From Hyphochytrium catenoides (taxonomy: Eukaryota; Protista; Hyphochytriomycota), in NCBI GenBank assembly GCA_900088475.1, contig FLMG01002824.1, positions 1-62,203 on the forward strand: DNA of 62,203 nt. The letters run 5' to 3'. Positions 2,366-62,047 of the stretch are shown piece after piece; position 1 is the stretch's first letter, and the number at the start of each line of letters is the position of its first letter. Under the pieces are notes generated by a model. The model was not told the origin of the DNA. It did not search any database and saw only the letters and a list, made by a program, of their open reading frames with translations. Both the position numbers and the translations under genes were made by a program.

Positions 2366-5068
2366 ATGCAGCCTTCTTCTTCTTCGGCATGCGGCCAGCT
2401 GTTGGAAGCAGGAGCTTTCCCAGAGTTTCTTGGGCTTCTCGGCTCCTTTCTCCCCGCTCGTGAGCTCATCTCCATCGCCCAGTGCGTCTTCTCCTCTCCC
2501 AGCAGCAGGAAAAGAAAAGCCGCGGAGCCCTCTCAGGAGCAGGAGAACAAGAAGAAAGACAGTCTCTCTCCTCCTCCTTTCTCCTCCGCCTCGTCCTCTG
2601 TCTCCTGGGCGTTCAATCTTAGCGTCTTCACCTATCATGCGCCGTCTTCAACGCTGAACAGAGTCATCTTCGCGGCCATCGCGGCTCATCAGCCGCAGAT
2701 CGTCGACTACGTGCTCCGCTCTCCTCAGTATGACCCGAACACTGCCATTATTAGGCGTAAGACCTTCAGTGTGAACAGCCTCATGCTGGCGGCCTGCGCC
2801 GGTCATCCAGGGATCCTGCACAGGCTGATTGCGGACGGTCGTTTGAGCGTTAGCGCGTCCATTCGGCCGTCTGAAGGTCTGCGGAGGAGCCGTGGCGTGC
2901 CTTCAGCCCAGCCTAAGGCCGTAGAGCCGGTACTGAGAGAATTGGAGGAGAGAGTGGGCCGTCTTCTCTCCTTGTGTGAGAATGTAGAGCTCTCGGCGTT
3001 GCTGCTAGCCAGCCTCAGCGGGCTAACAGCTTCTCTTTCTCTCCTACTGAACGCACTCTCTTCGTCTCCTTCTCTTGGTCCTTCCATCAGAGATGGCTGC
3101 TTTGATCCTCTCATGGTAGCTTCTCTCTTCGGGAGGACTGAGATCGTCCAGCTTCTTCTCTCTGATGGTCGAGTGGACCCTTCCTGGCAGATTCTGGACC
3201 GTTCAGGACGAAGAAAAGGCTGTCTAGCTTTCGCAGCGGAGGAAGGCCGCGTAGAGATTGTCCGCTTGCTGTTAGAAGATGGGAGAGTGGATCCGATGGC
3301 CGCTGTGCCTGACGATGGAGGTTATAATGCCTTACACTACGCCTGCGCCGCTGGAAAGACAGAGATCGTCCGACTGTTGCTTGAGGATCAGAGGGTGGAT
3401 CCCCGCGTGACCACCAGCGATGAGAACGGAAGCAAGCTGCAGACAGCGCTCATGTTAGCGTGCGCCAACGGCCACTTTGAAGTTGTCCGAGAGCTTGTGG
3501 CGGACAGGAGGAGTGACCTGCTCATGAGAGACTTGGACGGCAATGACTGCCTTGTCCTGGCAAGTCGGTCCGGACGATTGACCGGCAACGCTCTGACTGA
3601 ATACCTTCTGGAGCACTTAACTGGGTCGAGGGCCAGGATTCTGATGTCAGTAGCCTCTAGCCATGCTTCTCCCAGCATTGTCGAGGACTATATGCGAAGA
3701 CACATTGAGAAGGTCGTTGTTCTTCCGCAGGAGAGGGACGAAAGTGGAAGTGATAGTGAGGAGGGAGAGAGAGAGACAGAGGGGGAGAAGAGCACCGTCT
3801 GTCTCTCTCCTCGGCTAGCGGAGAACGTTCTCCGTGATGCTGCTGAGAATGGCCATCTCTGCATTGTCAATGCGCTCCTGGTCCATCGTCATCTTGGTCT
3901 TTCTGGACAGACCCCTGAGGGAGATTCCGCACTTGCTCTGGCAGGGCTCAACAGCCACGGAGAGATCTTCTGCAAGCTTGTGACAGATCCTCGTATAGAA
4001 AAGAGAGAGAAAGAGGAGTGGTTCCGGAAGTACTGGAGGCGGAGTTTATCGGCCGCGACTGCCGCTGAAGACATCGACTTTGTTTACTTTCTTCTGCACT
4101 ACTTTGACCCTCAGTCTTGGAGAGAGAGCAGTGGGACATCTTCGCCTGGCGAGGGAGAACCCAATCCTCTGATAGAGGCAGCAGACAAGGGAAGTTTCTC
4201 TATCGTGCAGCAGCTTCTCGCCGACGGCCGCTTCACTGCTGCTGACACTGACCGCTCAGGCTTCACGGCTCTTCATCGCGCCTGTCTAAGGGGCCATCGG
4301 CCGATCGTGGAACTTCTTCTGCAAGAAGAGAGGGTCAGCCCATCAAAATGCGTAGTGAAGGCCATCGACCATCCAATCTTTAGAAACCGTGGCTCTGCCC
4401 GCTCCTTGTACAAGATGAACGCCCTGCTGCTTGCATGTGAAGCCGGCCATCTCTCATCCGTCCAAATCCTGCTATCGGACGGCCGGATAAACCCCAATAC
4501 CACTATAGATCATGGGTATAATGCGTTGATGATGGCAGCAGTTCACGGCCATGCGGACATTGTCAGAGCTTTGCTAGCTGATCCGCGGACGGACGTCTTA
4601 GCGGTGGACGCCCTTGGACGGGACACCTTGATGCTAGCTTCGGCCTGCAACCAGTCTGCCGTGGTTCGGGTTCTGCTAGCGGATGGACGGATAGATCCCG
4701 GCCTGGTGGACTGCTTTGGACGTAATTCCCTCATGATGCGCGCGATGGCGGACCGAAGCCTGTCTCTCCCAAGACCTGGCTCTCCGCTGGACAAAGGGGA
4801 GCAGCCACTCTCTTACTGGCTGGATGAGGTCGTTCAAGAGCTCCTGAGAGACAGCAGGGTGCACCCAGAGGCGGTCGACAACTATGGCCGGAACGCCTTA
4901 ATGCTGGCCGCTGAGACGGGCCATGACCCTGTAGTCTATACTCTGCTGCGGGACGGACGGACTGATGCTGAGGCGAGAGATCGCTATGGCAGGACAGCGG
5001 TGATGCTGGCTGAGGCGTGGAAGAGAACCTCCATAGTAGAGCTGCTAAGGAGAGGGAGTGTATTATAG
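2366..5068 (+). CDS. Ankyrin-repeat protein, 900 aa, single exon
   Basis: Uninterrupted ATG..TAG ORF with many ankyrin units (GYNALHYACAAGKTEIVRLLLED, GFTALHRACLRGHRPIVELLL, GRNALMLAAETGHDPVVYTLL), often followed by a DGRVDP/DPRTD-type linker. Confidence 0.95.
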   Translation: MQPSSSSACGQLLEAGAFPEFLGLLGSFLPARELISIAQCVFSSPSSRKRKAAEPSQEQENKKKDSLSPPPFSSASSSVSWAFNLSVFTYHAPSSTLNRVIFAAIAAHQPQIVDYVLRSPQYDPNTAIIRRKTFSVNSLMLAACAGHPGILHRLIADGRLSVSASIRPSEGLRRSRGVPSAQPKAVEPVLRELEERVGRLLSLCENVELSALLLASLSGLTASLSLLLNALSSSPSLGPSIRDGCFDPLMVASLFGRTEIVQLLLSDGRVDPSWQILDRSGRRKGCLAFAAEEGRVEIVRLLLEDGRVDPMAAVPDDGGYNALHYACAAGKTEIVRLLLEDQRVDPRVTTSDENGSKLQTALMLACANGHFEVVRELVADRRSDLLMRDLDGNDCLVLASRSGRLTGNALTEYLLEHLTGSRARILMSVASSHASPSIVEDYMRRHIEKVVVLPQERDESGSDSEEGERETEGEKSTVCLSPRLAENVLRDAAENGHLCIVNALLVHRHLGLSGQTPEGDSALALAGLNSHGEIFCKLVTDPRIEKREKEEWFRKYWRRSLSAATAAEDIDFVYFLLHYFDPQSWRESSGTSSPGEGEPNPLIEAADKGSFSIVQQLLADGRFTAADTDRSGFTALHRACLRGHRPIVELLLQEERVSPSKCVVKAIDHPIFRNRGSARSLYKMNALLLACEAGHLSSVQILLSDGRINPNTTIDHGYNALMMAAVHGHADIVRALLADPRTDVLAVDALGRDTLMLASACNQSAVVRVLLADGRIDPGLVDCFGRNSLMMRAMADRSLSLPRPGSPLDKGEQPLSYWLDEVVQELLRDSRVHPEAVDNYGRNALMLAAETGHDPVVYTLLRDGRTDAEARDRYGRTAVMLAEAWKRTSIVELLRRGSVL

Positions 5069-7952: not shown

Positions 7953-8511
7953 GCGCAAGAGAAGCGATTGTTTGGATGTTAGTTGCTATGGCGCTAGAGG
8001 GGGAAGGAGGGTAAAGGAGCAAAAGGCACTGGTTATGGGGGCGAAGAAGAGCTTTAGGAAAGAGAGAGAGAGAGAGAGAGGGAGAAAGAGAAGCAAGAGA
8101 CCGAAGGGAGGGAGAGAGACAGCGAGCGAGGACCAGTGAGAAGACAAAAGGTGTAATAAGGACAGAAATGAAGCTAGCGAGCAAGAGGAAGGAAGAGAGT
8201 AAAGGGAAGAAGGGAAAGGAGAGAGACAAGGAGAGAACTGGGAAAGAAGAGGGAGACAAAGAGAAAAGAGAGAGAGAAAGAGAGGGAAATGAGTGTAAGA
8301 TCCATCTTCGCCGGCTAAGGAAGGCGAGACCGCACTCTTCAATCTCCACTTCGACAGTCAAAGAAAGTCTCTCACGGCGGTCGGAAAGAGTCACCAAAGA
8401 GTGCGCGCCTTCTCTCCCTCTCTCCCTCTCTTTCTTTTCTCTCTCTCTCTCTTCTCTCTTCTCCAGAATCTTCTTCTCTCTCTCTCAACAGTCCCAAGAG
8501 GAGAGAGAGAG

Positions 8512-10182
8512 ATGTTCGAAGCCGTTAAAGCAACGCTGGTACGGCACTGGACGGTCTCTCCCCCGCCTCGGACGCCAGAGCAGGATGAGGCCGAGAGATA
8601 TCTCATCTGCATCCCCATGCTGTGGAAGCCTAACAAATATCTCACTGTCTCGGCCATTCCTTTCAACCGCTGGCTTCTTTTCTTCGCGTCTTTCCTCATT
8701 CAGTTCTGCTGCGGCTCTCTCTACGCCTGGTCTGTCTTCAACAAGCCCATAGATTCCTTAGTGTACAACGATCCCAAGGCAGAGAAAGCGGTCAATGCCT
8801 TCTACATTGCTGTCGGAATGTTTGGCACCACGGCCGCGATCCTTGGGCCGTGGCTTGAGAGAAGCGGACCACGGATGGGCATGCTGGTAGGCACCACGTC
8901 TTTCTTGCTAGGCAACCTCATTGCCGCTCTCTCCCTGGGAAAGAAGAGCATTGTTGGCGTGTACATTGGCTACGGGATCTTCTGTGGCTTTGGCTTAGGT
9001 CTGAACTACATTTCGCCTGTCAGCGCGCTGCAGAAATGGTTCCCTGACTACAGAGGCACCGCTGCGGGCTTTGCCGTGGGCGGTTTTGGAGCTGGCTCTG
9101 TCGTTTGGGGCAAGGTCTATCTTCCTACGATAAAGACTGTAGGTCTGCCGTGGACCTTCTTTCTTTTAGGCTCGGTGATGGCTGCGGCGATGTATGTCAG
9201 CGCTCTGGCTCTGAGAAGCCCTCCTACGGGCTTCAGTGTGGGTGGCTTGGACATGCACGGAGAGGCTGTTAGCAGCGGTCCAGAGGACGACGTGGCGGCA
9301 AAGAAGATGGAAGGCGGAGAAGAGGGACAGCAGACGATGGCAAGAGACGGACAAACCTCGGCCACCACGTACAAGCTAAAGGAGGAGGAAGAGAGCGGGA
9401 TGGGGAGGATCAAGCATCTCCCTCTTATCTCGTGCATCTTCTCTCCAGACTTCTTCTTCCTCTACCTCATGTTCTTCGCCAACCAGCTCTTTGGTCTGAT
9501 GGTCCTCTCCAAGCTCTCCAACATGACTGTCGATCTCTTCGGAAAGACAGCAAATGATGGAGCTAATGTTGTCTCTGTTAATGGCGTCTTCAACTGCGTG
9601 GGCCGTCTGTTATTACCTATGGCTTCAGACTTTAGCATCCGTTTCTTCAAGCTCAACCCGGCGTTTGGCAGGAAGTGTGTCTTCTTCTTCACTCTCCTTA
9701 TGCAGGCGATTATCGTGGGCACACTGCCCATTGTCATCGATGACAAGAGCTACTCTGTCTTCCTCGCACAGGCGTGGATCTTGACAATGCTCTATGGCGG
9801 AGGGTTTGGCACCATCCCTTGCTTTCTCACAGACATGTTCGGTGCTTATAACATTGGAGCCATGCACGGCTTCATCCTCACTTCTTGGTCGATTGGAGGC
9901 GTAGCCGGAGGCTTGGGCTTTAACGCGGCTTACAAGAAGATTGTAAAGGAGACAGGACAGCCCGCGGAGGCGTACAAGGAGATCTTTCATTCTATTCTCA
10001 TTGTACTTATCTTAGGCTTCTTCATGCTCTTCTTCGTCAGAACGAACCCCAAGGATCGCTTTGCCCCTGGCTATCAGTACAGCGTCTGTGACAAGCCTGT
10101 CATCAAGATCAAGCCAAGGGCAGGAAGGGAAAAAAGAGATGAAGAAGAGAGAGAGAGAAGGCCAGATGTCCATGGTGCATAG
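8512..10182 (+). CDS. Major facilitator superfamily transporter, oxalate:formate antiporter (OFA)-like, single exon
   Basis: First in-frame ATG at 8512 (MFEAVK). Motifs FCCGSLYAWSVFNKP, YISPVSALQKWFPDYRGTAAGFAVGGFGAG, FNCVGRL and YGGGFGTIPCFLTDMFG, with about 12 hydrophobic segments in two halves. Confidence 0.93.
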   Translation: MFEAVKATLVRHWTVSPPPRTPEQDEAERYLICIPMLWKPNKYLTVSAIPFNRWLLFFASFLIQFCCGSLYAWSVFNKPIDSLVYNDPKAEKAVNAFYIAVGMFGTTAAILGPWLERSGPRMGMLVGTTSFLLGNLIAALSLGKKSIVGVYIGYGIFCGFGLGLNYISPVSALQKWFPDYRGTAAGFAVGGFGAGSVVWGKVYLPTIKTVGLPWTFFLLGSVMAAAMYVSALALRSPPTGFSVGGLDMHGEAVSSGPEDDVAAKKMEGGEEGQQTMARDGQTSATTYKLKEEEESGMGRIKHLPLISCIFSPDFFFLYLMFFANQLFGLMVLSKLSNMTVDLFGKTANDGANVVSVNGVFNCVGRLLLPMASDFSIRFFKLNPAFGRKCVFFFTLLMQAIIVGTLPIVIDDKSYSVFLAQAWILTMLYGGGFGTIPCFLTDMFGAYNIGAMHGFILTSWSIGGVAGGLGFNAAYKKIVKETGQPAEAYKEIFHSILIVLILGFFMLFFVRTNPKDRFAPGYQYSVCDKPVIKIKPRAGREKRDEEERERRPDVHGA

Positions 10183-38469: not shown

Positions 38470-41226
38470 AGCACTTTCTCTTGATCAATCTCTCTCTCTC
38501 TATCTCTTTCTTTCTCTCTCTCTCTCTTTCTCTCTCTACCTCTGACACACATTATCCTTATGCCTTTTGCATCACCTTGAATAGCAGAGGAAGCCCCTGA
38601 TTTGTCTCTGAATTTCTATAGCCGCAGCTTGACGGAGAAAGAGATGCATTCTCTTGCGAAAGAGCAACCGGCCCATATGACCTCTGATGGAGAAAGAAAG
38701 GGATGTAAGGTCAGGACGGAGTCAGTGCACGGGAAAGTCAGATCAGTTGCTCCAGCACATGGAGCTAGTAAACAACCGCGAGGAAAAGAGATAGAGAAAG
38801 AGAGAGAACTAGCAGCGTATGAAGAAGTTGAGTGACCTATTGAACTATTGGGCAGGAAGAAGAAGAAGAGCCTCTGACGTTCTTTTGAGTCAAAGAAGAC
38901 ACATAAGACCTCTCCTTACCGGTAGACTCTCTGCATGTCCACTGCAGCTCTAGTCTGTACGAGCTGCAAGAGGAGAGGAAAAAGAGGGAGAGGGAGAGGC
39001 AGAAGATGAAGGAAGAGACAGGAGTTTTGGGGGTTGGAGAGAGAAGAAAAGAGAGAAGGAGGGACGAGAGGTAGAGAAGGGCGAGTCAGAATGAATAGAC
39101 ACCTTGAGGCATAAACAGACCGGGAGCCCTTTGAATGAAGCAAGCGGAACTTAGAAAATAAAGGTTAAGACACTGAGAGTTAGACGTATCACTCTCGTAA
39201 GACAAAGGGAGAGATCAGGGCGCATCTTGAAGAAGAAGAGAAGCAACTGCAAGAGCGACGAACAGGGGAAACCAGAACATGGGGGCACCAACCTGTCTCC
39301 TCTTGGCAACTGTCTTCCGTCTTCCTTTACTTCCCCTGAAGACCCTTTGTATCTCTCCTGCCGCGCCATCCTGGTCCCTTCTCCTTCTAAGCTTGGCCAC
39401 TCTCTTTCTTGCCCTTTTGCCTCTCCACATTCTCTGAATATCCACAGCACTCTTTCTTCTTCTCTCTTTAGCACGAAGTCTCTTGCATAGGTTCCGAGCA
39501 AGAAATCCTCTCCCTAGTGCCTGAAGCAATCGGGCAGAGTCATCCTCTCGTATCAGCTGTTCCAGACCTATGGCGAGAAAGACGAGATGATAAGAACGCG
39601 AGACATGAAAGTGAGAGGATGACCGATACGATTGCCTAGGAAAGAGGACGCTAAGCTCTTTGAAAAGAAAGAAGGAGTCAGCGACCGAGACAGTGAAGAG
39701 TGAGACGTAGAAGAAGAAAAAAAAGCCAAGGAAAGTACCTGCTTCGCCTTGTGGCATATCGTTAACAATTCTGTTAGAGAAGATCACTCGTCCTGAGCAC
39801 CGCTCGACTGCAAGAACGTCCCATATACTTTGAGAGTCTTGAGAGTGAGCATGCAAGGGCGGACAGGGAAGTTCTGCCAGAAGGCCCTTCGACACCAGAA
39901 CGGAGACAATCGCTTTTGAGGCATGATGCCTCTCCAGGTCTCTTGCCTTTCGTGCAGCCTGAACAAAGTCCAAGAGCAGAGGTTAAAGAAAAGAAGTGAA
40001 TGGGAAGACCGCGCAGAGAAGAGAAAGACCATCCCGAGCTAATAGCAAGCAGGCTAGAGAGAGAGACGGCGAAAGAGAAAAGAGTTGACACGTTCTTTTC
40101 ATAGAAGAATGGAGACCCAGTTCTTGGGCAACGTCACCTGGAGAGAAGAGCCTCCTGGCCCGTTCTCTTCGCCTTCTAACAACTTAGAGCCCAAGTTAGA
40201 CGGGGGAGAGAGGATGACGTAGTACCGGTACCATCCTTCTCCTAGGTCTCTTTCCCAGTACATTGTATGGACAACAGGTCCTGCTGCTCCGTTCTGGCTT
40301 ACTACTTGTGCCTCCACAAGGTTGGAAGAGGATATTGGATGAGTTGACCGAACGATCTCAGATGTCTGTCTGTCGCCTTTCTTAAGTCTCTCTGTCGAGG
40401 AGACACGTGTGACAGGAGAGATAGGGACCGCGCAATGTGGATCCAGGCGGCAGGATGGGTCTACCCATTGAAGGACAACCTGGACTTTCTTCTCCTTAAA
40501 GAGAGGGAACAGGTGCATCCTAAGGTTGATGCGATCTCCTAGAGCAAAAAGCAGAAAGAGAATGGGTGAGAGAGAGAGGCACAGCTGCAACCCGGTGAAG
40601 AAAGGGAGAGATGAAGAAATAGAAACAGAGAAGAAAAGAGAGGGAGGCTGAGAGAAAGAGAGAGATAGCTAGAAAGAGATGAGGTTAGAGTAAGATCTAG
40701 CCGGATTCTCCGGCAACTCAAATCAAAGTAGTCGAGAGAGATACAGCTAGAAAGGTAGAGTGAGGGAGTTGGCAGAAGGTAACGAGGTGGGAGAGAGAGA
40801 CCCGCATTGCCAGGAGGTGTACGCCTCGCTGTCCCAACATATCCTGGAGCTGAGGCAGTCACAATGAGCTCTGGCGCTGGGGAGGACTGGACGTCCAAAT
40901 GATAGGAACACCATCCATGATCGTTAGGAGTGACCTCGTACAGAGGTGAATGGCATCTGTGCGAGATGTAGAGCAGAATGTGAGACAGCCACATGGAGGA
41001 AGAAGATAGAGACAGAGAGAGTGGGTCGAGGAGCACTTGTAATAAATAGAACAGCGTTGGTAGGAGAGTGGAAAGTGGAGACAGGCAACAGACACAGGAG
41101 CTTGGAAAGAAGAAGGGAAGTGAAAAGAAGGGCTAGAGAACTTTGCTAGAAATAACCTAGCATCAAAGATGTACTTGCGAGAGAGAGAAAAAGAAAGAGA
41201 CAGAGAGGAGAGAGAGAGAGGGAGAG

Positions 41227-41286
<60 letters not shown>

Positions 41287-43456
41287 AAAGAGAGAGAGGG
41301 AGAGAGAGCGAGAACGGACGTAGGCTCAATGCATGAAGTTGCTGTTACCTTAGAAAGCCTGTTTGTGAATGACTGTACGAGGAGTGGAAGCGAACGCGGA
41401 TTAGGCGACGGGCGGCTTCCTGGCATCCCGAGACCTCCACTGAATAACTAAAGAGAAAGAGTAAGCACAAAGATATGAGGACACGGCAGGGGGATCGCAG
41501 AAGCCGAAAGGAAAAGACGGAGAGACGAGAAAGAGAGAAGAAAGAGTGTCTAAGGAATAGAGACAACTAGACAAGGGATCAGTGCGTTCACGGTATAGGG
41601 CAGACACTCTATCACCCCAGAGAGGAAGCGAAAAAAGGAGAGAGACTTCGTCCCCTTGTCCCTATTTTTAAGGCTCCATGCCTAGGCCTTACCAATCCTT
41701 CCGATCTAACCGCCACTAGTCAAGACGGAGAGAGAAGGTGATACTGCCTCTTCAACAGTGTATCTCTCTCTTTCACTCTCTCTCTCTCTCTCTTTTTGTC
41801 TAAGCTCAACTTACATAGTCGGCACCACATATCTCCACAGAATCATGGAAGAGGGGCCTGAAGGTCTTCCTCCTCCTGACACCAAGTTCCAATCGTGGGC
41901 TGTGAAACAGAGACAGAGATTGTGACGCTGAAGAGGGAAAGAAACAGCAGAGTAGGGAGAGCGAGAGAGGACCGGATAGCGTGCAAGGAGGATGCCACTC
42001 GTCGAGCCGACGCAAATCACATTTTTCTCCAGTGTGCTGGCGAGATCATACAAAGAAAATAGAGTAAGCGGGAGGGGGAGGGAGAGAGAGAGACGACAGA
42101 AATAGGTAGAGAGAGACCCGCGCGCGTGGGGAGAGATAGAGAGAGGAAAGAAAGATAGAGAGAGAAACAGAAAAGCGGAGGCAGAGAGAGAAGGAGAGAT
42201 ATCCAGTCAGTCAAACATAATAAAGATATGTTGTCTCTCTCAACAACCTCAGCCACTCATTTATGGAAAAGTCTCTTTCTTCGTCGTCTTTCAAGGTCTC
42301 TTTCTTTATGAGAACACTGACCTGGTGACTGTTATAGAGTCTGGAGAGCGGGCCTTATGGCTTCCAAGAGCACCTCCAAAGGGCTTCGCGGGAGATGGTG
42401 CTGCCCAGTGGGCGGTCTTCTCTCCTTGAGGAGACGCAGAGAATGAAAGAGTAGAGGTAGCTTCTCCTGCTTTTCCTCCTCCGTCCCCTTCCCCAAAAAG
42501 TCCAAAGAGCCCCTGAACTGGCCAGCCAAGGGCCATCGTCCAGGTATGCGGCGACATCGAGCGGATGACAGAAGTGTTAGAGAGCAGAGCTCCCGTCCTG
42601 TGGGCAGAGAGCAGTTAGGAAGAGCAATTGGGATCAGAGAAAGAGAACAGAGGTTGCAAGTAAGGGGAGAGAGAGAAGAGAAACCAAGAGAAAAAGAGCT
42701 CCTCTTTCTTGCCTCTTTGCTTACCGTGCCTCCCAGTAGAGCACCTCCCTTGTGCTTGTTGTGCATTGCAGGATAGCGCTATCCTCTGACCAGTCAAACT
42801 GGAGAACATAACCAGAAGCTTTGCTTACGCACTGGGCAACCTCTCTCACTTCTCCAGGATGTGGAGTAGAAGAGGAGAAGGGAGAGTCTGCAGAGTTAGA
42901 GCTGGAAGAATGAAAGAGGAAGACGGACAATATTCCATCTCTTCGAGCCACCGCTAGCAGTCTACCGTCAGGAGAGAACTTCAGAGCCTGCACAGCCTTT
43001 GAAATGGTCTTGCGGCTGACACTAGAGCAAAGAGGAAGAGTCAAAGGAAGAGATGCGACCAGGGAAGGGGTAGACAGGTTGAAGGCTAGCGATGAAAAGA
43101 AGACAGAGCAGCAGAAGTTGTAGCTCCAGAAATTAGGGCTTTCGGGAGCGTAGCAGTTGGGCCAGTGCCAGCATTATAACGGGACCAGAAGAGTAGCTGG
43201 CACCGCTTAAAGGGTCTAAAGAACGAGAGGACACAGCCTGGACAGAGATAAGAATGTGCTCTGACCTCTGAGATTGCTCCTGCCGTCCGTCTGGCTTTAT
43301 GGTTCCTGGTGCGGAGGGCCCTGACCCTAAGCATATAAGGGCAAATAAAAGGCTTTAACTCCTAGTAGTGCTGGCTGTGGCAAGCCGTAAGGGGCACAAG
43401 TCCCGCAGACTCTTTCATCTCTTCGCATTGCTTGTGCTTCGTCGTCTTCCCTCTTC

Positions 43457-43513
<57 letters not shown>

Positions 43514-48541: not shown

Positions 48542-51073
48542 AGTGAGACCATCAGGGATCATCAAACAGAGCTGCACAGGGGCATTGTTAAACACAGGCA
48601 GCAAGACTGGGAGATGCAAGGACGAGAAGCGTTTAGCTTTTAAAGTGAGAGAGAGAGAGGTGAAGCCAAGATTCTGTTCCCTGACTTGTGAGCATTCCAT
48701 AGCTTCTCTCTGGTCGAAGAGTGGAAGACTTGCACGTCCTCTTCCTCTCTCAGAGGAGACCGCTAAGGATAGATTCGAGGCGGGAGAGAAAGAAGAGAGC
48801 CGTCCAGTGGAAGGCAAAAATTAGATCTTGGGGCAGGAGAAGGGATGAATGGAGAGACAACCGAAATCAGACAATTCTCAAGGAAAGAGAGAGAGAGAGA
48901 GAGAGAGAACATGAGGCTGAAAGAGAGGGCCCAGAGACCACAGGACATGCAGATGGGAGAGAGATGACGCTACGTTTAGGTGAAAAGGAATGAAGCGCAA
49001 GAAACATGAGAGACGGCGAACTGCAGATAGGAGGAAAAGTGAGAGCGAGACAGAGAGAGAGAGAGTTAGAAAGGAGAGACGAGACCACTCGCTTAAAAGG
49101 AAGAGGTGATAAAGCAGAAGGAGCGAGCCCACCTCAGGCTCGAGGCCAAGGTTGTAGACGTCACTCGCGTCAGCCAGACGAACCTCGTACAGCGCTAAAG
49201 AAAGTGTGAGACACGATAGCGGAGAGTTGATGTCAGTGAGAGAGAGAGGGAAAGAGAGAAGAGGCAGAGGACCGTAAAGAGAGAGAGAAAGTGCAATGGG
49301 ACGAGGCCGTCGTGGAGGTGCCGGGAGAGAAACATTTGAGGGAGACAGAAGAGGGAGAAGAGATAAGTGACAGAACTCTGGCCATGCAGAGCAGAGAAGA
49401 AAGCCAGAGAAGGAGTCAGCAGAAGCCCATCAAACTACCTCGTTTGACTGGACTCTTGTGCGGAGTTTTGCCTTCTTTCATCTGCGCCTCTGCTTTCTTG
49501 TTCCTTGCATTTAGCCGCTGGTCAGGAAGGGATCAGGGGAGAGAGTGCTAAGACGCTATAATCAAGTGGGTTACCAAGTGGGGGAGAGAAAGAGAGGGGA
49601 GAGGGAGAGCGAGAGAGAAAGAGAGAGATGAAGAACCGCCGAGGGCGGGAGAAGAGATAGGAGAGAGAAGCGAGGGAGACTAACGGAGACTGCCAATGGA
49701 GGAGAGTAACGCAGAACGACAGCAGCTTGACCAAAAGGGAGAGTCGAAGGAAGGGTACAGAGTGTCACTTAGAGCGAAAGAAAGAGGCAGTTAAAGGAGA
49801 GTGAGAACCAAACCTTCACGTTCCTCGCCCAGGCTGCCGCGGCGTGCACTATCTCTCTCTCTCCTCGTTCTGTCCTCCGCTGTGATGTCCTGCTATCTCC
49901 TCCTCTCTCTCTTTTTGCCCTTGAGAGCGGAGAGTCGGAACCCACTTCATGAGAGAGAGACGAGGGACCAACGTTCCTTGAGACAGCACGATAAGAGGGA
50001 GAAGAGAGAGAGAAAGGACCTTCTTCTCTCCTGTCATAATCTTTCAGGTCTTTCTGAAATCCTCTCTGCTGTGCTTTACTCAGCGATCGCACAGCCTCTT
50101 CCGCCCGTTCTACTGCCTTCTCCATCTCCCACTGCTGGGTGGTTAGAAGGTAGTGAAGATCAGGGCCTGTTCTCTCTTCTTTTTCTCTCTCGTCATCTTT
50201 CTCTTCCTCCTTCTTTTCTTCGGAATCCTCCAGGTGTCTTTTGCTCTTCCTGGCAGTAGGAGGGAGGACAAAAGAAGACGGAGTGGTGCTCTTTCTCGCA
50301 GTAGATTGGGCTATTTCAGCAGGAAGAAGTGGAGGTCCGAGAGAAGAGAGACTATGGTCGTCGTCTTCTCTCTTCTCCAGTCGGTCTTCTCTTTCTCTGT
50401 CCTCTTTCTCTCCTTCTGTGGCGTGTCCTCTGGGAGGAGTCCTGTCCTTGTCATCGTTCACTTCTCTCTTTCTTTTCACTGGCTCCGTCGCTTCTCCTTG
50501 TCCTACACGGCTCATAGTCTTTCCTCTTTCTTCTGTCTCTATTCTTCTCTGTTCTCCACCTTCTCTCCCTTTACTCTTCCCACTTCCTCCTCTTTCCAAA
50601 GTGGATTTCCTCTCTCCTTCCTTTTTCAGGCGTGCCCGGCTGGGAGGTCTTTCTTCAGAAGAGAGAGAGCACGAAGAAGAAAGAGAGAGAGATTCTCCTC
50701 CTTCTCCATCTCCATTCTGGTTATTCCTTTCTTCTTTAATCGTCTTCTGCCTGTCAGCACTCTGTACAGCTTCGGCTGTCTTTATTGGGATAACCTCGGG
50801 CTGAGGCGGAGGAGAGAGGAGAGGAAGAGACTCTCCCTCGTTTGATGGAGGAGAAGAAGAAGTAGCAGAAGAGAGAGAGAGAGGTTGGCTGCCGTCTCTC
50901 TCTTCTTTCTTCAGCTCTGTAAGGCTGGAGGAAGAGAGGGAATTGGGGAGAATGACAGATTCCGCTGGTCTCTCCTCCTGACTATGGGGCACCCTCTCCA
51001 GTACCTCCTTTCTCTCTCCCTCCTGAGCTGTGAGAGAAGAGCGAGTGCTCTCAATCTTCCCCTCTTCACTCAT
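34809..51073 (-). CDS. EML/EMAP-like WD40 protein with C-terminal IQ-motif/coiled-coil region, many exons
   Basis: Low-complexity exon 1 (51073-49814); HELP-like segment VYPPEW..PPDSFLKPQRVHG (about 48000-47915); WD40 exons (LFTEHRGEISCMALSHD, ISLSFSPDGDLLAT, ALKFSPDGRLLAV, LQFDWSEDSAILQ, TWTMALGWPVQG); many IQ motifs (IQRMWRGKRARK, IQRVYRGHRGRR, IQRIARGRAARR, IQRVLRGNVARR) at 36200-39500; last exon 35035-34809. Continuity as one gene is inferred. Confidence 0.75.
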
Positions 51074-51074
51074 C

Positions 51075-51110
<36 letters not shown>

Positions 51111-52050
51111 CCTCTCACAGGAAAGAGAAGTAGAGGCAGCTAAGGTGCCTGCACGTCTCGTCCTCCTCCTCCCATTTGGACGCCTTCTGTGACCTTACGC
51201 TTTAAACGTGGTAACCCCCATCCTCTCTTCTCACACTGTCAACCTCTCTCCCTCTTTGTCTCTTTCTCTCTCCCTCCCTCCCTCTCTCCCTCTCGCTCTC
51301 TCTCTCTTTCTCCGTTCTCTCTCTCTTCTCCCTTTCTCTTCCTCTCTCTCTTGCTCTCTTGCTTACAATGGAGGGACAATATTGGGCGGTGCTGTTCCTC
51401 TTCCTAGGTCACATTCCTCTGGGCGGATGAACAGATAATGTAAAAGTGGTGCTGTCTCTCTTTTCTCATTCTCTTTCTCCTCTCTCTTCCGTCCATCTTC
51501 TCTGCGCTTCATGCCTCTCTTCTTCACAGCTCTTTCGGATTACCTTGATACCTAACCCGAGCGCGAGAGAGAGAGAGAGTGAAAGAAGCGTTGACAGGAA
51601 GAGAGATTAAGACACCTTGCTCAGAGGACCCTCTCGAGAAAGGGAGCCAATCGAGGAAGAGGGTGGAGCCAGGCAATTTCTTGGACAGTGATTACTGTCA
51701 CGGACGAAGAGAGAGAGAGAGAGAGAAAAGAGAGAGAGAGAGAGAGGAAGAGAAAGAGCGAGAGAGAGGAAGAGAGCGAGAGAGCGAGAAGAGGGGCATA
51801 AGAAGAAGGTAAAGGCTGTGTCGGTTCACTACCTAATCTATTCCCGATAAAGCTCTATGAAGCTGCTCTCATACTAAATATCAGCGATTTGCATTCCTAA
51901 TTGATCTTCAAGCTCCTCGCTTTCCTCCCTCATCTTCTCTCCTCGTTCCTCCTCCTCCCTCCTCCTCCCTCTGCTCCTTCCTCCGTCCTCTGCTCCATCC
52001 TCCTCCTTCCTCTTGCCGCTGACTCTCTCTGTCCCTCTCCTCCTCCCTTT
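35780..52050. repeat. (GA/CT)n microsatellite-saturated block 2
   Basis: Tracts at e.g. 38420-38540, 41180-41310, 43460-43510, 51070-51360 and 51708-51790; nearly every EML intron is polypurine on the + strand. Confidence 0.9.
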
Positions 52051-52688: not shown

Positions 52689-55600
52689 ATGATGGAAGCA
52701 AGCAGTGAGCCAGACTCTGGTTCCCCGACCACGGAGCAGTCTCGCCTATTGCAGGCACGAGCATCGAGCAAAACATCGAGTACTATCATGGGAACAGTAC
52801 GCCAGTACTGCTCCTCCTATCGACAAGTCATGCCAACAGCCACGCTAGATGAGGCACAGGAGGAGCAGTCTTCTGCTAACTACGGCTCCTCATCGCCGAC
52901 GATGCAGAAGCAACATCGAATGTCCTTCCTCTCGTCTCACTGCGCTTTAGAGGCCCTGAAGGGATCTCGCACGGTCTGGACTGATCCTGCTTTCGATCTC
53001 CGGCATCCCTCTGGCACCATTAGAGTCTTCCTATCCTCTACCTTTACAGATACTGTGATGGAGAGAAACAAGATAATTCAAGTTGTCGCCCCAAAGCTCC
53101 AGGAGTACGGAGATGGTAAGGGTATACGAGTACAGTTAGTAGAAATGAGATGGGGGATTCAAGATATGGCCACCAACAGCCATCTTACGTGGGACATCTG
53201 TCGCGAGGAGCTCCAGCGTTGCATCGACATCTCGATGGGAATCTTCTTTGTCAGTCTGGTATCAGAGAAGTATGGATGGCGGCCTATACCACGAAGCATA
53301 TCAGAGGGCAATTGGAACATTATTCAGTCAAAGTCGATGAGCGCTCTCTTCTCCTCCTCCCCCTCATTGTCATCGGATTCTCAACCTATTCCTTCATCAA
53401 GCTCTCTGGGTGAGGAGTATCAACAACGATTCCAAGATCTTCATCAACTTTATGCGAAAGACGAGAACTGCATTCCCCCTGTTTGGACGCTGAAGCCGCT
53501 CGTTTCTCCCGAAGACAAAGCTCGTTATTATGGTTTGAGTGAGCCGTGTCGGCGTTATCTTGCTCTTTGTGTTCCGGACTGGGACATTAACCAGAGCGTC
53601 ACACATTGGGAAACGAATATGGCGCTTCAGACTCGTGAGCGCGACCGTATCCTCTGGATTCGTCGAGTGTTCAACGATTTTAGCGAGTGGTCGTGTAACC
53701 CCAAGTGCCGAGACTTCGTCGACTTTACCCCGGTCAATGCCCCAGATCTAGAGGCCAGAGAGTGGCTCAGGCATGTTTTGCACAAGGATCTTGCGGCAGG
53801 AGCTGGCCATATCATCGAGTTACAAGCGTCTCTGGTAAGGATGGTGGTAAAGAGGAAGGCTCGTCCAGAAAACAGTGGCAGAGCCCTGGTAGAAGAAGAC
53901 GAAGTGGAAGCGTTTACACCTTCAGAGTCGTATCTCAACCAACTTTGCGATTGCTTGCTAAAGCGGCTGAAGGAAGAAGTAAATAGCGCCGCGGTAATTT
54001 TACACGACTGGAAGTTATCGGCGGCGGCCATGGGGTTCAATGAGCCGGACGTGATGATGAAGGAATGTTTGCACCACATTGCTTGGGCTAAGCAGAAGCA
54101 GCAGTCCTTCTTCGGAAGACAAGCTCTCCTGGAGCAAATCGTCTCCTCCGTACAACGACAGTTGGCTCAGAGCTACGAATTGGAAGAAGGTTTCAGCTCC
54201 ACAGAACATTGCCATCTGCTGTTCTCTTACCGCACCCTTGTTCAAGGATGCAGTCTCTGCAGGGCTCTTGAGAAGTATGGTGGAGAAAGCGGAGGAGGAG
54301 CAGACGAGGAATGCGAAGAGTATGGTTGTCGAGTTTGTGCTTTGAGCTTTAGCGCTTGCCCCACCTGTCAGGCCAAACTGACGGTCAGGAAAGGTACACC
54401 ACCCGTAAAGGTAATGAAGTTGAGCTCCGCCTTCCATCATCCTGCACACGAACACCCTCTTACATCAGAGCTAGCAAAAGGTCAAGCACGTCGATGCGAT
54501 ATTTGCGACAAAGGAACCGCGGACACGGCGTGTTGGTATCAATGCCGACAATGCGGCTTTGATCTCTGTGACAAGTGCATGGATGCAAAGCCTTACGTGA
54601 AAGAGAAGGTCTCTGAAAGTGGCTACGTGTTCCCTTCTCGTTTCTTAGTCCTAGTTGGCGGATCGGGAAGCGGGAAATCAGCCTTATTATCAATGGTGGG
54701 GAAGGCTTTATCGGAAGCTTTGGACAATGAGAGCACCTGGATTATTTTTCGCTTCTGTGGAACAAGTGCGCTGAGTAAGACACGACATGATGTTATCAGG
54801 TCCATCGTCCAGCAGCTGGCGGCGATACTTGGGGAGACGGCACCTCTTCCTACTACATATGGAAGCCTGGTCACAGTCTTCTACACCCTCTTGACAAAGA
54901 TCCCGCAGGATCGGACGCTTATCGTCGTCATGGACAGTCTTGATCAGCTGGCTGACTCGGGAGAAGCGGGGATCAACGAGCTTCAGTTCCTGCCTGTTAA
55001 TTGCTGTCCCTCAAACGTATTCTTCCTTCTCTCCTGCCTGTCGGACCACGAGAAGGGTGGCGTTGGCTACGAACAAGGCCTTCGTCAGCTAGGAATACCC
55101 ACAGTAACAGTTTGTCCACTGGATGAGACCGACGGATGCGCGATCTTAACTGGGATGTTACAATATGCTCAGCGGCAAGTGCTCAACGAGGGACTTCTGA
55201 CCGCTATGATGTCATCTGCTCGGGATGGCAGCAGTACTCCACTCTTACTGCACTTGATTGTCGTCATATCCAAGAAATTTGCCTCTTATGACCTGATACC
55301 TACGACCTCGTTTACAAAAGGAGTCAAGGAGGCCGTTGCTTTCATCTTGGACGATCTGGAGTTAAATATGGGCAAACGTCTTGTTTCCCACACTCTCTCT
55401 TACGTGACCTTTTCCCGCTTCGGAGTGTCAGAAGATGAGCTACTCGACCTTCTGACGCTGGATGACGAAGTCTTGAAAGAGACCTTTCAGTACTGGGTCC
55501 CACCTATCCATCGCATGCCGCAGCTTCCACTATTTCGTCTCTTGCAGTCATTGGGCGATCTCATCGTCGTAATGAAGGGGAATTGTATTCAATGGCATCA

Positions 55601-58261
55601 TCGCCAGATCTTGGAGTGCGCTAAAGAAAGGTACATAGACTTGGAGATTCGGACACGGAAACGTCTGTCGGATTACTTTACCAATGCGGTGGGTGTCACC
55701 CTGCGGGAAAGTAGGCTTGTTAAGCCCCAGATGCTGTTTAAGGACGGAGATCATCGACAACCTAATTTGAGGCGCTGCCATGAAGGTGGATACCAGCTCA
55801 CGAAGTTGCTACTCAAGGCAATTGGAAAACCCATGCAACAAGTTCTGCACGAGCCACAGCTACCAGAAGCCACTATTACTAAAGATGGCTGTCGTGGTGG
55901 CGAGAAGCAAGAAGAAGTATGCGCACTGGAAGCGTCAACTAAGCTTGTTCAAGAGCTTTGTACGCTTGAAGCAGTTGAGGCTCGAGCAAAAATGAAAGAC
56001 GACGAGCTATTTCTGGCCGTCTCATCATTGATAGCTGTCCAAAATTTTCTTCGGTCGTCTGTTGATTGCCAATCTTCTACCCCCCACGGTGAAAATGCGG
56101 TGCTGGAGCTCACGAAGTCGGCAACAGATTTCCTCTATTGGATACGGCAAAGTGGTCATTTGTTGAAAAGAAACTCGTCAATGCTGTTTGCCTCGGCAAT
56201 TACTCAGCCATGTAGTCTGTCTCTAGTACACGACATGGCAACTGCTGCGTTCAGAGATCGGTCTTCTGGGAACTTTGGCCGAATCTGGTGTCGGATCTTG
56301 CCAGTCGTGAGAAGCTTTGACAAGTGCATGTTCAAGCTGGAAGGCCATACGGCTGATGCTACAGGTGTTGCCATCACCGCTGACGGCCAGTTGGCGGTGT
56401 CTGCGTCTTCAGACACTACCATTCGAGTGTGGCGTTTGCATTCGGGAATCTGCGAGAAGACCATGACAGGCCATAGCGCACCTATAACCAGCGTGACTGT
56501 GACAGAGGACTGCAGGAAGGTGGTATCTGCCTCCTACGACAGAACCATTGGCGTGTGGGATCTCAATACGGGCTTCTGTCAGGGCAGACTTCGAGGACAT
56601 ACCTCGACAGTGACCAGCGTCGTAGCCTCTTCTGTGAATCAGAGCTGTCTAGTTCTGCTCTCTGGGTCCAGGGATAAGACACTGAGAGTTTGGCATCTCC
56701 CAGCTGGCACCGACGACTATTCAGATGAGCGCAGTATCGTGCTAGAGGGGCACGCTGGTGGCGTCTTGACTGTCGCACTGACTCCAGATGGCAGGAGAGC
56801 CATCTCAGGATCAGAGGACATGACGATTCGTCTTTGGTACATTGCTGACGGCGGCCGAGTATGTCAGGGCGTGCTCGCTGCCCACTGTGACGCTGTATCT
56901 ACTGTCATCGCCACTGCAGATGGGAGAAAGATCGTGTCTGGGTCCGCGGATAAGACTCTTCGAATATGGGATATCGGAACAGGAGTCTGTGAGAGGACTG
57001 TTGACTGCAGCTCCTCTGGCGATGAGATCCGCAGCGTTGCAGTGACGGCAGATGGCCTGCGAGCCATCGTTGGATTTGACTGGAAGACTGCGTCAATTTG
57101 GAACTTGCAGACTTCATCTTGTGAACAGTTGCTTGAAGGCCATTCAGCTTCGATAACATGTGTCGCTATTGCTCCAAATGGGTGGCATGGAGTATCCGCA
57201 TCAGAGGACACCACAGTCCGCGTCTGGAATTTGCGTTACTCCGAGTCTGTTGCTCACACAGGTGCACGCGATGATGATGAGGTAAAAGAAGAAGAAAGAG
57301 CAGGGCAAGAAGAGGAGGGTCATACACTTTGGGTAAGCTGCGTCGCACTGACAACCGATGACAGGAAAGTCATATCCGGATCTTATGATACCACAATTCG
57401 AGTCTGGGACATCGAGACGGGTGAGTGTGAAAGAACTCTGGAGGGCCACTTGCGTACTGTCAGTACCATCGTCATAACCCCGGATGGAACCCGTCTACTC
57501 TCAGGATCGATTGACAAGACTATCCGCCTTTGGGATCTTTCTTCTGGTGAATGCATCGACGAAACAAGGCTTCCGAAAGCCCCTGCTACTGAGAATTCGT
57601 CCTCAAATTCAACAGCGTCCTCTGAAGCTCGTATCCAGAGTCTCGCCTTGACCGCCGACGGCAGAACCTTAGTAGTCGGATCGGGATGCGGTGGGGTGTT
57701 CCTCTGTCGTCTGTCGCCTACATCTGGAAAAATAGAGGAACAGAAGACGATGGGTACCCACTCCGACGCTGTGACGAGCGTGTACGTCTTGCCAAATGGG
57801 GGCAAGGCCGTCTCTGGATCGCACGATAACACTATTCGTGTCTGGAGCCTTCAGAGTGAACAGTGCGAGGAGCAAACGCTTGTGGCACATGATGACGTCG
57901 TGAGTGACGTTCTTCTCATAAAAGCAGGAAACTAGTAATATCAAGCTCGTGGGATAGCACCATTCGGATTTGGGACGTGGCATCCGGAGTTTGCCAAGGG
58001 ATATATCGAGGACATTCTGGCCGAGTAATGAGTCTGGTCCTGAGCAACGATGGAGCTAAGATGGCTTCTGCCTCTGAAGACCGAACTGTCAAGATATGGG
58101 ATCTACCTTCAGGGCAATGTGAGGTCACTTTAGAGGGCGATAGCTCTGCAGTGATGTGCGTAGCATTCGCTCACAAGTTCTCTTGCGAAGGCAGTCTAGA
58201 ACATAGGAAGCTTGTGTCCGGGTCGCAGGACAACACGGTCCGGATATGGCAACTTACTTGA
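52689..58261 (+). CDS. DUF4062-NACHT-WD40 STAND NTPase (NWD1/NWD2-like), intronless, with a 1-nt frameshift near 57920-57935
   Basis: IRVFLSSTFTD..ER..VEMRWGI..ICREELQRC..KYGWRPIP (53019-53291); FFGR (54108); Walker A GGSGSGKS (54657-54680); IFRFCGTS; Walker B IVVMDSLDQL (54921-54950); GVSEDELLDLLTLDDEVL; WHHRQ; then about 13 WD40 repeats from about 56330. The main frame stops at 57935 but WD40 repeats continue in a shifted frame to TGA 58261. Confidence 0.93.
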
Positions 58262-61008: not shown

Positions 61009-61039
<31 letters not shown>

Positions 61040-62047
61040 AAGGGATCATCACCCTCCTGGTGCCCTCATAGACCGCCGCCCCTAGAAGAGCTCCCAAGAA
61101 AGGCCCCACCACAGGGACCCAAGCGTACTCCCACTCAGCTCTTCCCTTTCCTTTGATAGGAAGAACGAAGAAAGAGAGACGTGGGCCCAAGTCTCTCGCA
61201 GGATTGGCCGCAAAGCCCGTCGGTCCTCCCAGAGCAGAGACACAGAGGCCAATGTAAGAGGAGAGAAAGAACGCGAAGAAGATTCTTCGATAGAGTAAAG
61301 GGAGAGAGAGAAGAGAAGTTGTCGGAAGAAGAAGAGAGAGATCCCCAGCGCTGTTTGCTCCCACCACCAGGAACATTGTCCCTAACATCTCCGTGATAAG
61401 ATTTTGCGCCCAGTGGTAGATTTCTGGCCGAGTAGAGAAAGAAGAGAGCTTTCCAGCTTGGTCTTTATAGACGAGAGAGACGTACTCCCACTCCTCAGGA
61501 GAGAGAGAAGAGAATGAAGGATCTCTCTCCCTAAGAGAAAGGAGAAAGTCACCGTCTGTCATGCCTTGTTCTCGTGGAGGGAAAGAGAGAGGTTGTGCTT
61601 CTCTCTTCTTCTTCTCTTCCTCTCTCTCGCTCATTCTTCTTCCGGCTTCCCTGACAGGCGGAAGAGGAATGAAAGGAAGATCTGATCCTCTTCCTCCAGC
61701 TTCGTCCTTTGACAGCTCGAGGCAGACAGAGATGTCAGACTGGGGAGGAGGAGGAGGAATGACCGTAGAAAGAGAGGAGAGAGAGAGAGAGACAGGTTTC
61801 TTGACTCCCATTCTAAACTGACCCAAATGGATCAGATAACCCGTCACGCCGCCCAAGAAACATCCTGCCAGCTCCGCGAGAGAGAAGAGAAGAAACTCTT
61901 CTNNNNNNNNNNNNNNNNNNNNNNNNNNNNNNNNNNNNNNNNNNNNNNNNNNTGAGAGAAGTGCCGAAGGTCAGCGCCCACCAAGAGCCCACCAGCTCGG
62001 AGGCTGCCTTGGTCCAGATGCTCACCATGTTGAAGAGAAAGAGATAG

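Follow-up and report, generated by a model that had tools for sequence, protein, structure and literature searches.

A candidate two-finger insert inside the NTPase domain of a TeTIR-NACHT-WD40 protein from Hyphochytrium catenoides

The sequence considered here is contig FLMG01002824.1 of the Hyphochytrium catenoides assembly GCA_900088475.1, positions 1 to 62,203 of the forward strand; this whole stretch of 62,203 nucleotides is referred to as the window. Our subject is one of its genes and, within that gene, a Cys-rich segment of ~145 amino acids (aa) that appears to lie inside the nucleotide-binding domain (NBD) of the encoded protein. The gene consists of one open reading frame (ORF) without interruption, and its end coordinate includes the stop codon. 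Its features are listed below, where A1 denotes an alignment of 29 sequences (the window protein and 28 homologues).

52689-57935, forward strand: the whole gene, a single uninterrupted ORF of 1748 aa
53022-53306, forward strand: core of the DUF4062/TeTIR (TIR-like) domain, aa 112-206 (Pfam DUF4062, 34.9 bits against a cut-off of 24.7)
54045-54191, forward strand: NBD helices ahead of the P-loop, aa 453-501, including HH..W......FFGRQ at aa 462-478, which is of the hhGRExE type (predicted local distance difference test score, pLDDT, of 88-97 in AlphaFold2, AF2)
54192-54626, forward strand: the insert of ~145 aa, aa 502-646, absent from 25 of the 28 aligned homologues
54207-54368, forward strand: module 1, aa 507-560, a candidate Cys/His module with a Gly/acid-rich loop (ligand pattern common to module 2)
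54444-54581, forward strand: module 2, aa 586-631, a putative DC1/C1_2-type finger with a ZZ-like C-terminal half (Pfam C1_2; PDB 1v5n)
54636-54968, forward strand: NACHT/NPHP3_N P-loop core, aa 650-760 (Pfam NPHP3_N 33.1 bits, NACHT 26.7 bits)
54657-54680, forward strand: Walker A, GGSGSGKS, aa 657-664 (G..G.GK invariant in A1)
54918-54950, forward strand: Walker B region, LIVVMDSLDQL, aa 744-754 (D..DQL nearly invariant in A1)
55323-55637, forward strand: NWD1-type winged helix, aa 879-983, with HRQ in WHHRQ at aa 969-973 (Pfam HTH_NWD1, 43 bits against a cut-off of 27)
56310-57908, forward strand: WD40 repeats, aa ~1208-1740, ~12 blades (Pfam WD40, 243.6 bits over nine stretches, plus propeller models)

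These matches show the predicted protein to be an intact member of the DUF4062(TeTIR)-NACHT-WD40 family, of the NWD1/NWD2/TEP1 kind, and its domain order is that of human NWD1, NWD2 and TEP1 and of chytrid homologues (e.g., Blyttiomyces KAJ3313821). An initial annotation of the window, made from the sequence alone, had described it as resembling NLRs (nucleotide-binding leucine-rich repeat receptors) among the signal transduction ATPases with numerous domains (STAND), and the Pfam architecture agrees, placing it with NWD1 and TEP1. Assignment to the NACHT clade of STAND proteins draws on a Walker A of the form G.{4}GK[ST], a Walker B of the form hhhhD with D..DQL, and a predicted fold in which the NBD is followed by helical domain 1 (HD1) and a winged-helix domain (WHD). 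Assignment to the NWD1/TEP1-like family draws on the DUF4062/TeTIR domain directly upstream of NACHT, together with the NWD1-type winged helix.

As judged from the alignment, the NTPase motifs (Walker A, Walker B, and the winged-helix HRQ, whose H, R and Q are nearly invariant in A1) are intact. FFGRQ at aa 474-478 represents the hhGRExE-type motif, and its H, F, G and R are likewise nearly invariant in A1; Leipe, Koonin and Aravind reportedly described this motif in 2004 as conserved on a helix that lies a short way ahead of the P-loop strand. The WD40 region is complete, with enough predicted repeats for two beta-propellers.

At the other end of the protein, E174 of the TIR-like domain, a candidate for the catalytic Glu of the NADase (E1008 in TEP1), lies within a C..E[ILVM] motif, where 59 of 64 relatives also have Glu. 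DUF4062 (TeTIR) has been described as a TIR-like NADase in the effector position of STAND proteins, with members in animals, a few fungi and protists, and prokaryotes (bioRxiv 10.64898/2026.05.01.722283; 10.64898/2026.09.21.753143), and a length of 200-350 aa is given for the domain in a 2026 preprint. The stretch from the DUF4062 core to NACHT (aa 207-452, 53307-54044), which includes a Ser-rich low-complexity run at aa ~220-240, probably belongs to the extended TeTIR domain.

Position and composition of the insert

FFGRQALLEQI starts at aa 474 (nucleotide 54108) and Walker A at aa 657 (nucleotide 54657). The distance from start to start is 183 aa, which confirms, in length and in coordinates, the ~180 aa that the initial annotation had placed between them. 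It had also taken this spacer to be short as a rule, and the measured distances bear this out: from the GR motif to Walker A, the family peaks at 22-25 aa (in a sample made up of the best 150 representatives of the family and four hits of a word search), and the closest homologue has ~30 aa. Proteins of the NWD1/NWD2/TEP1 kind have 22-35 aa here and no Cys-rich segment, whereas the window protein has 179 aa and two modules. In A1, the columns for aa ~502-646 are empty in the homologues counted in the list above, and the GR helix on one side and the β1/Walker A block on the other align cleanly. Cys-rich inserts occur at this site in only 2 of the ~155 family members examined, and the position was thus rightly called unusual.

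The composition of the segment is equally distinctive. It holds 15 Cys and 6 His within its 145 aa, and Cys makes up 10.3% of aa 500-645 versus 2.4-3.2% across the rest of the protein. The flanks were searched for DNA footprints of an insertion, and only short chance repeats were found.

That the insert falls within the NTPase domain, as initially claimed, is a point on which two lines of evidence agree. The first is structural. An AF2 model of aa 440-1000, built with the 29-sequence alignment, has a predicted template modelling score (pTM) of 0.73 and a core pLDDT mostly >88; the helices at aa 453-472 and 478-501 and the NBD-HD1-WHD core are predicted with confidence. Residues 24-561 of this model align with residues 118-469 of Apaf-1 (Z = 20.1 over 320 residues), while the NB-ARC domain of NRC1 aligns from its residue 153 (Z = 20.7) and NLRP3 gives Z = 16.1. 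Because the model aligns from about residue 24 onto Apaf-1 118 and NRC1 153, the helix that precedes the insert would be the first helix of the NBD.

The second line comes from Pfam. In homologues without an insert, the AAA_16, ATPase_2 and nSTAND1 models start at the GR helix and cross the P-loop; in the window protein they resume after the insert, at profile positions 25-33, and the isolated pre-insert helix gives a weak match to nSTAND1 positions 8-33. According to the model, then, the insert is inside the NTPase domain at its N-terminal edge, between the first NBD helix and strand β1. The comparison with Apaf-1 (PDB 3sfz, 1z6t) is instructive in both directions. Its NBD-HD1-WHD core, including the helix ahead of the P-loop, aligns to the model, and WD40 propellers follow in both proteins; Apaf-1 differs in its CARD effector, in its NB-ARC-type NBD, and in having nothing inserted between the first NBD helix and β1.

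Two Cys/His modules had been proposed within the insert, and both of them (module 1 at aa 507-560 and module 2 at aa 587-630) fit a single ligand pattern, H.H.L-x(8-14)-CxxC-x(6-26)-C-x(1-3)-Y.CxxC-x(1-6)-F-x(1-3)-CxxC, with eight candidate ligands present in each. This pattern had no match among the 154 other proteins fetched. A stricter form of it was absent from all 100,000 shuffled versions of the insert, and module 1 was the only match that it had when the window was translated in six frames.

Module 2 had been likened to DC1/C1_2 or ZZ-like fingers, and this description stands. It scores 30.7-33.7 bits against Pfam C1_2 (DC1), for which the cut-off is 26, and 27.2 bits within a 1200-aa query. 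Its best match among solved structures is 1v5n, the DC1 domain of At1g60420 (E = 0.0024), with which it shares the N-terminal H.H.L and the CxxC spacing. Its C-terminal half, Y.C..C.FDLC..C, reads ZZ-like: the last ligand pair is CxxC in module 2 and in ZZ fingers of the p62, p300 and HERC2 type, but HxxC in DC1. As far as its sequence goes, module 2 is intermediate between DC1 and ZZ, and neither family model fits it fully. Two other assignments were rejected: ZZ (PF00569) reaches 12.3 bits against a cut-off of 21.4, and FYVE reaches 21.3 bits against 27.8, the module reading ARRCDIC with no HHCR of the basic R(R/K)HHCR motif.

What backs a putative finger fold with eight ligands and two zinc ions for module 2 is the match to 1v5n, which is a match of sequence. 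For module 1, the case consists of the shared pattern and of a weak resemblance to module 2 (E = 0.025 in an internal comparison), which together suggest a second, more divergent finger.

Relatives and origin

A search of 1.84 billion representatives ranked highest four hypothetical chytrid proteins, from Blyttiomyces, Phlyctochytrium (two) and Chytridium. These four share 34-46% identity with the window protein by phmmer (32-43% in A1, where the core is 36-43% identical), and the insert is absent from all of them. Next come NWD1-like proteins of animals and a protein of Rhodelphis. A CxxC cluster upstream of Walker A was found in none of 150 representatives, two metagenome scans returned no relative of the insert, and feature searches of the ESM Atlas gave no usable match for it; there, the combination of finger and P-loop retrieved plain NACHT clusters only.

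A word search did recover one finger-bearing protein. P0001 is a distant homologue of 2149 aa from the Logan assembly of run ERR2843956 (L001 178-6627), and it carries a Pfam ZZ finger (35.3 bits, cut-off 21.4) directly before Walker A. It is like the window protein in its family, in the insertion site, and in having a finger before β1/Walker A that BLASTP aligns with module 2. It is unlike it in having a single ZZ finger, which comes after a low-complexity acidic/Ser stretch, and the identity over the core is only 26-28%. The initial annotation had named this layout the best candidate in the window for an undescribed system. The finger insert is rare and its position unusual for the family, but the layout is not strictly unique, since P0001 carries a ZZ finger there too.

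Some further features of P0001 should be recorded. In its finger, the second of the usual CxxC pairs is short of one Cys. The TIR-like domain has Gln at the position equivalent to E174, so that the effector may be inactive. No poly(A) tail is present on its contig.

In a maximum-likelihood tree built on the NACHT-WHD core, with the insert excluded, the window protein and the four chytrid proteins form a clade with 99% support in the Shimodaira-Hasegawa-like approximate likelihood ratio test (SH-aLRT). P0001 is placed elsewhere, and its weakly supported neighbour, P0058, is also without a finger. An arrangement with the window protein and P0001 as a sister pair was rejected by the approximately unbiased (AU) test (p = 0.0076). 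Because the AU test rejects this pair as a clade, two independent gains at one loop are likely and provide the simplest reading of the two finger insertions; one ancient gain followed by many losses is possible.

The finger module was probably gained recently in the lineage of the window protein, at a loop that tolerates insertions. P0089, P0115 and P0125, three NWD1-like proteins which form a clade (92% SH-aLRT), have an acidic/low-complexity insert of 90-128 aa in the same loop between the GR helix and β1, and several other relatives have 46-62 aa there. The loop can be considered permissive because these homologues carry low-complexity inserts in it.

Possible roles of the insert

NLR-like STAND receptors are usually described as an effector, an NTPase and a repeat sensor, with integrated domains between or after these blocks; in plant NLRs, integrated domains are known from the termini or from between whole domains. 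Here, a binding-type domain appears within the NTPase itself, in the loop adjoining the P-loop, and a related finger seems to have arrived independently in the same loop in another lineage. Nothing is new in the family, in the types of finger, or in the concept of integrated domains; the novelty lies in the position and its apparent recurrence. Within the limited collection of literature searched, we came upon no account of a zinc finger lying within a NACHT or NB-ARC domain, nor of a plant integrated domain within the NBD.

Two published systems offer the nearest comparisons. In the NLRs of Sordariales fungi, zinc fingers are almost exclusively C-terminal (PMC12258605). Plant NLRs with integrated domains are like the window protein in being STAND immune-type receptors with a non-canonical C1_2-type domain (PMC4759884), but they are NB-ARC-LRR proteins (LRR, leucine-rich repeat), whereas the window protein is TeTIR-NACHT-WD40.

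On balance, and with moderate confidence, we think that the ~145-aa insert in the loop between the FFGRQ helix and β1 is an independently folded binding module of two fingers, which would add a second input or a localisation cue to a WD40-gated NACHT/TIR-like switch. By analogy with Apaf-1 and with the proposals made for TEP1 in the 2026 preprints, the WD40 propellers would hold NACHT off until a ligand releases it; nucleotide exchange and oligomerisation would follow, and the clustered TIR-like domains would then cleave NAD+. The fingers would fold separately, as an appendage on the NBD's N-terminal face that adjoins the effector domain, and could there serve as an extra module that binds a protein end, a partner protein or a lipid. 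A decoy aimed at a pathogen would be one special case of such an added input.

Several observations weigh against this proposal. Module 1 has no Pfam match and no PDB match. Structure prediction, which the initial annotation had named as a check on a separate fold, gave confident flanks and a confident NBD core, but no finger fold was modelled: with the alignment, aa 507-646 stayed at a pLDDT <50, and a single-sequence AF2 run gave an implausible all-helical model with a mean pLDDT of 45.8. Word-based searches, whether with aa 500-650 within full-length candidates or with the insert alone, found no relative of the insert and no insert-bearing orthologue. In one 2026 preprint, human NWD1 and NWD2 were without NADase activity in vitro, which makes the effector chemistry uncertain for this branch. 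Finally, given the low-complexity inserts in relatives, an insert in the GR-helix-to-β1 loop need not have a function.

This last point leads to the alternative that we take most seriously while considering it unlikely, namely that a promiscuous finger module, or a duplicated pair, is carried as a neutral passenger in an insertion-tolerant loop and has no sensing or regulatory role. The low-complexity segments of P0089, P0115, P0125 and the other relatives are what such tolerance would predict, the closest homologues work without any insert, and module 1 looks degenerate, with its Gly/acid-rich loop and no family to which it can be matched. However, all eight candidate ligands are intact in each module, the frame is open over 145 codons, module 2 still lies above the Pfam curated cut-off, and the ZZ finger that P0001, from an unrelated branch, carries at the corresponding site suggests that the position is useful for a finger. 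A strict integrated decoy of the plant type, in which the fingers mimic a host DC1/ZZ target of an effector and effector binding triggers the receptor, often with a paired helper, seems to us less probable again. In its favour, Sarris et al. (2016, PMC4759884) record C1_2 as integrated in plant NLRs of three families and name a C1_2 protein of Arabidopsis among effector interactors, and the gain of the finger domain is lineage-specific. Nevertheless, neither a pathogen, an effector or a paired helper nor a donor gene is known in this case, the protein already has its full C-terminal WD40 sensor, and the searches turned up nothing related to the insert in any protein. A decoy aimed at a pathogen is possible, and no better supported than a neutral passenger.

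Far less credible than either is the suggestion that the segment is not in the protein at all, being an in-frame intron or an assembly artefact. There are 19 in-frame GT...AG pairs that could bracket the insert. Set against them, the segment encodes a Pfam domain above its curated threshold; its frame 0 is free of stop codons, of which the other two frames hold 8 and 5, and is also the frame that its codon usage matches best; no introns interrupt the gene elsewhere; and an equivalent finger-bearing ORF exists elsewhere (P0001). Because of these coding signals, an in-frame intron is very unlikely.

A bolder extension of the binding-module proposal, which we offer as speculation and rate as improbable, is that ZZ/DC1 fingers recurrently dock in the α0-β1 loop of TeTIR-NACHT proteins and form there, within the NBD itself, a second sensor that would directly gate nucleotide exchange or effector clustering. 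ZZ fingers grip protein N-termini, and a finger in the α0-β1 loop could read new protein ends or a partner. Should this be true, it would be a form of NLR-like receptor wiring not yet described. Even on the more modest assumption that the fingers bind something, the window protein would show in compact form how an additional input can be wired directly into the switch domain, and it would fall in the TeTIR/DUF4062-NACHT family, whose effector chemistry was recognised only in 2026 preprints. If they bind nothing, the loop would be a permissive one, possibly useful for the engineering of STAND proteins.

Other features of the window

Other long ORFs of the window are listed below.

2366-5068, forward strand: ankyrin-repeat protein (Ank_2, 245.9 bits)
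8401-10182, forward strand: major facilitator superfamily (MFS) transporter (MFS_1, 70.5 bits)
49769-51118, reverse strand: ORF of 449 aa rich in E/R/K/S, with no Pfam match
61038-61856, reverse strand: C-terminal part of a major intrinsic protein (MIP)/aquaporin (48.5 bits)

The stretch at 40-50 kb has a strong purine skew, with GC skew of up to 0.31 and AT skew of up to 0.36, and because of this skew it contains many spurious ORFs of the SLSLSL/ERERE kind. The 449-aa ORF may be a mere by-product of purine-rich repeats. Upstream of the gene, long dinucleotide arrays of the (GA)n/(CT)n type, together with a TCCTCCCTCC array, occupy 41179-41313, 43460-43512, 51244-51359, 51708-51793 and 51923-52012.

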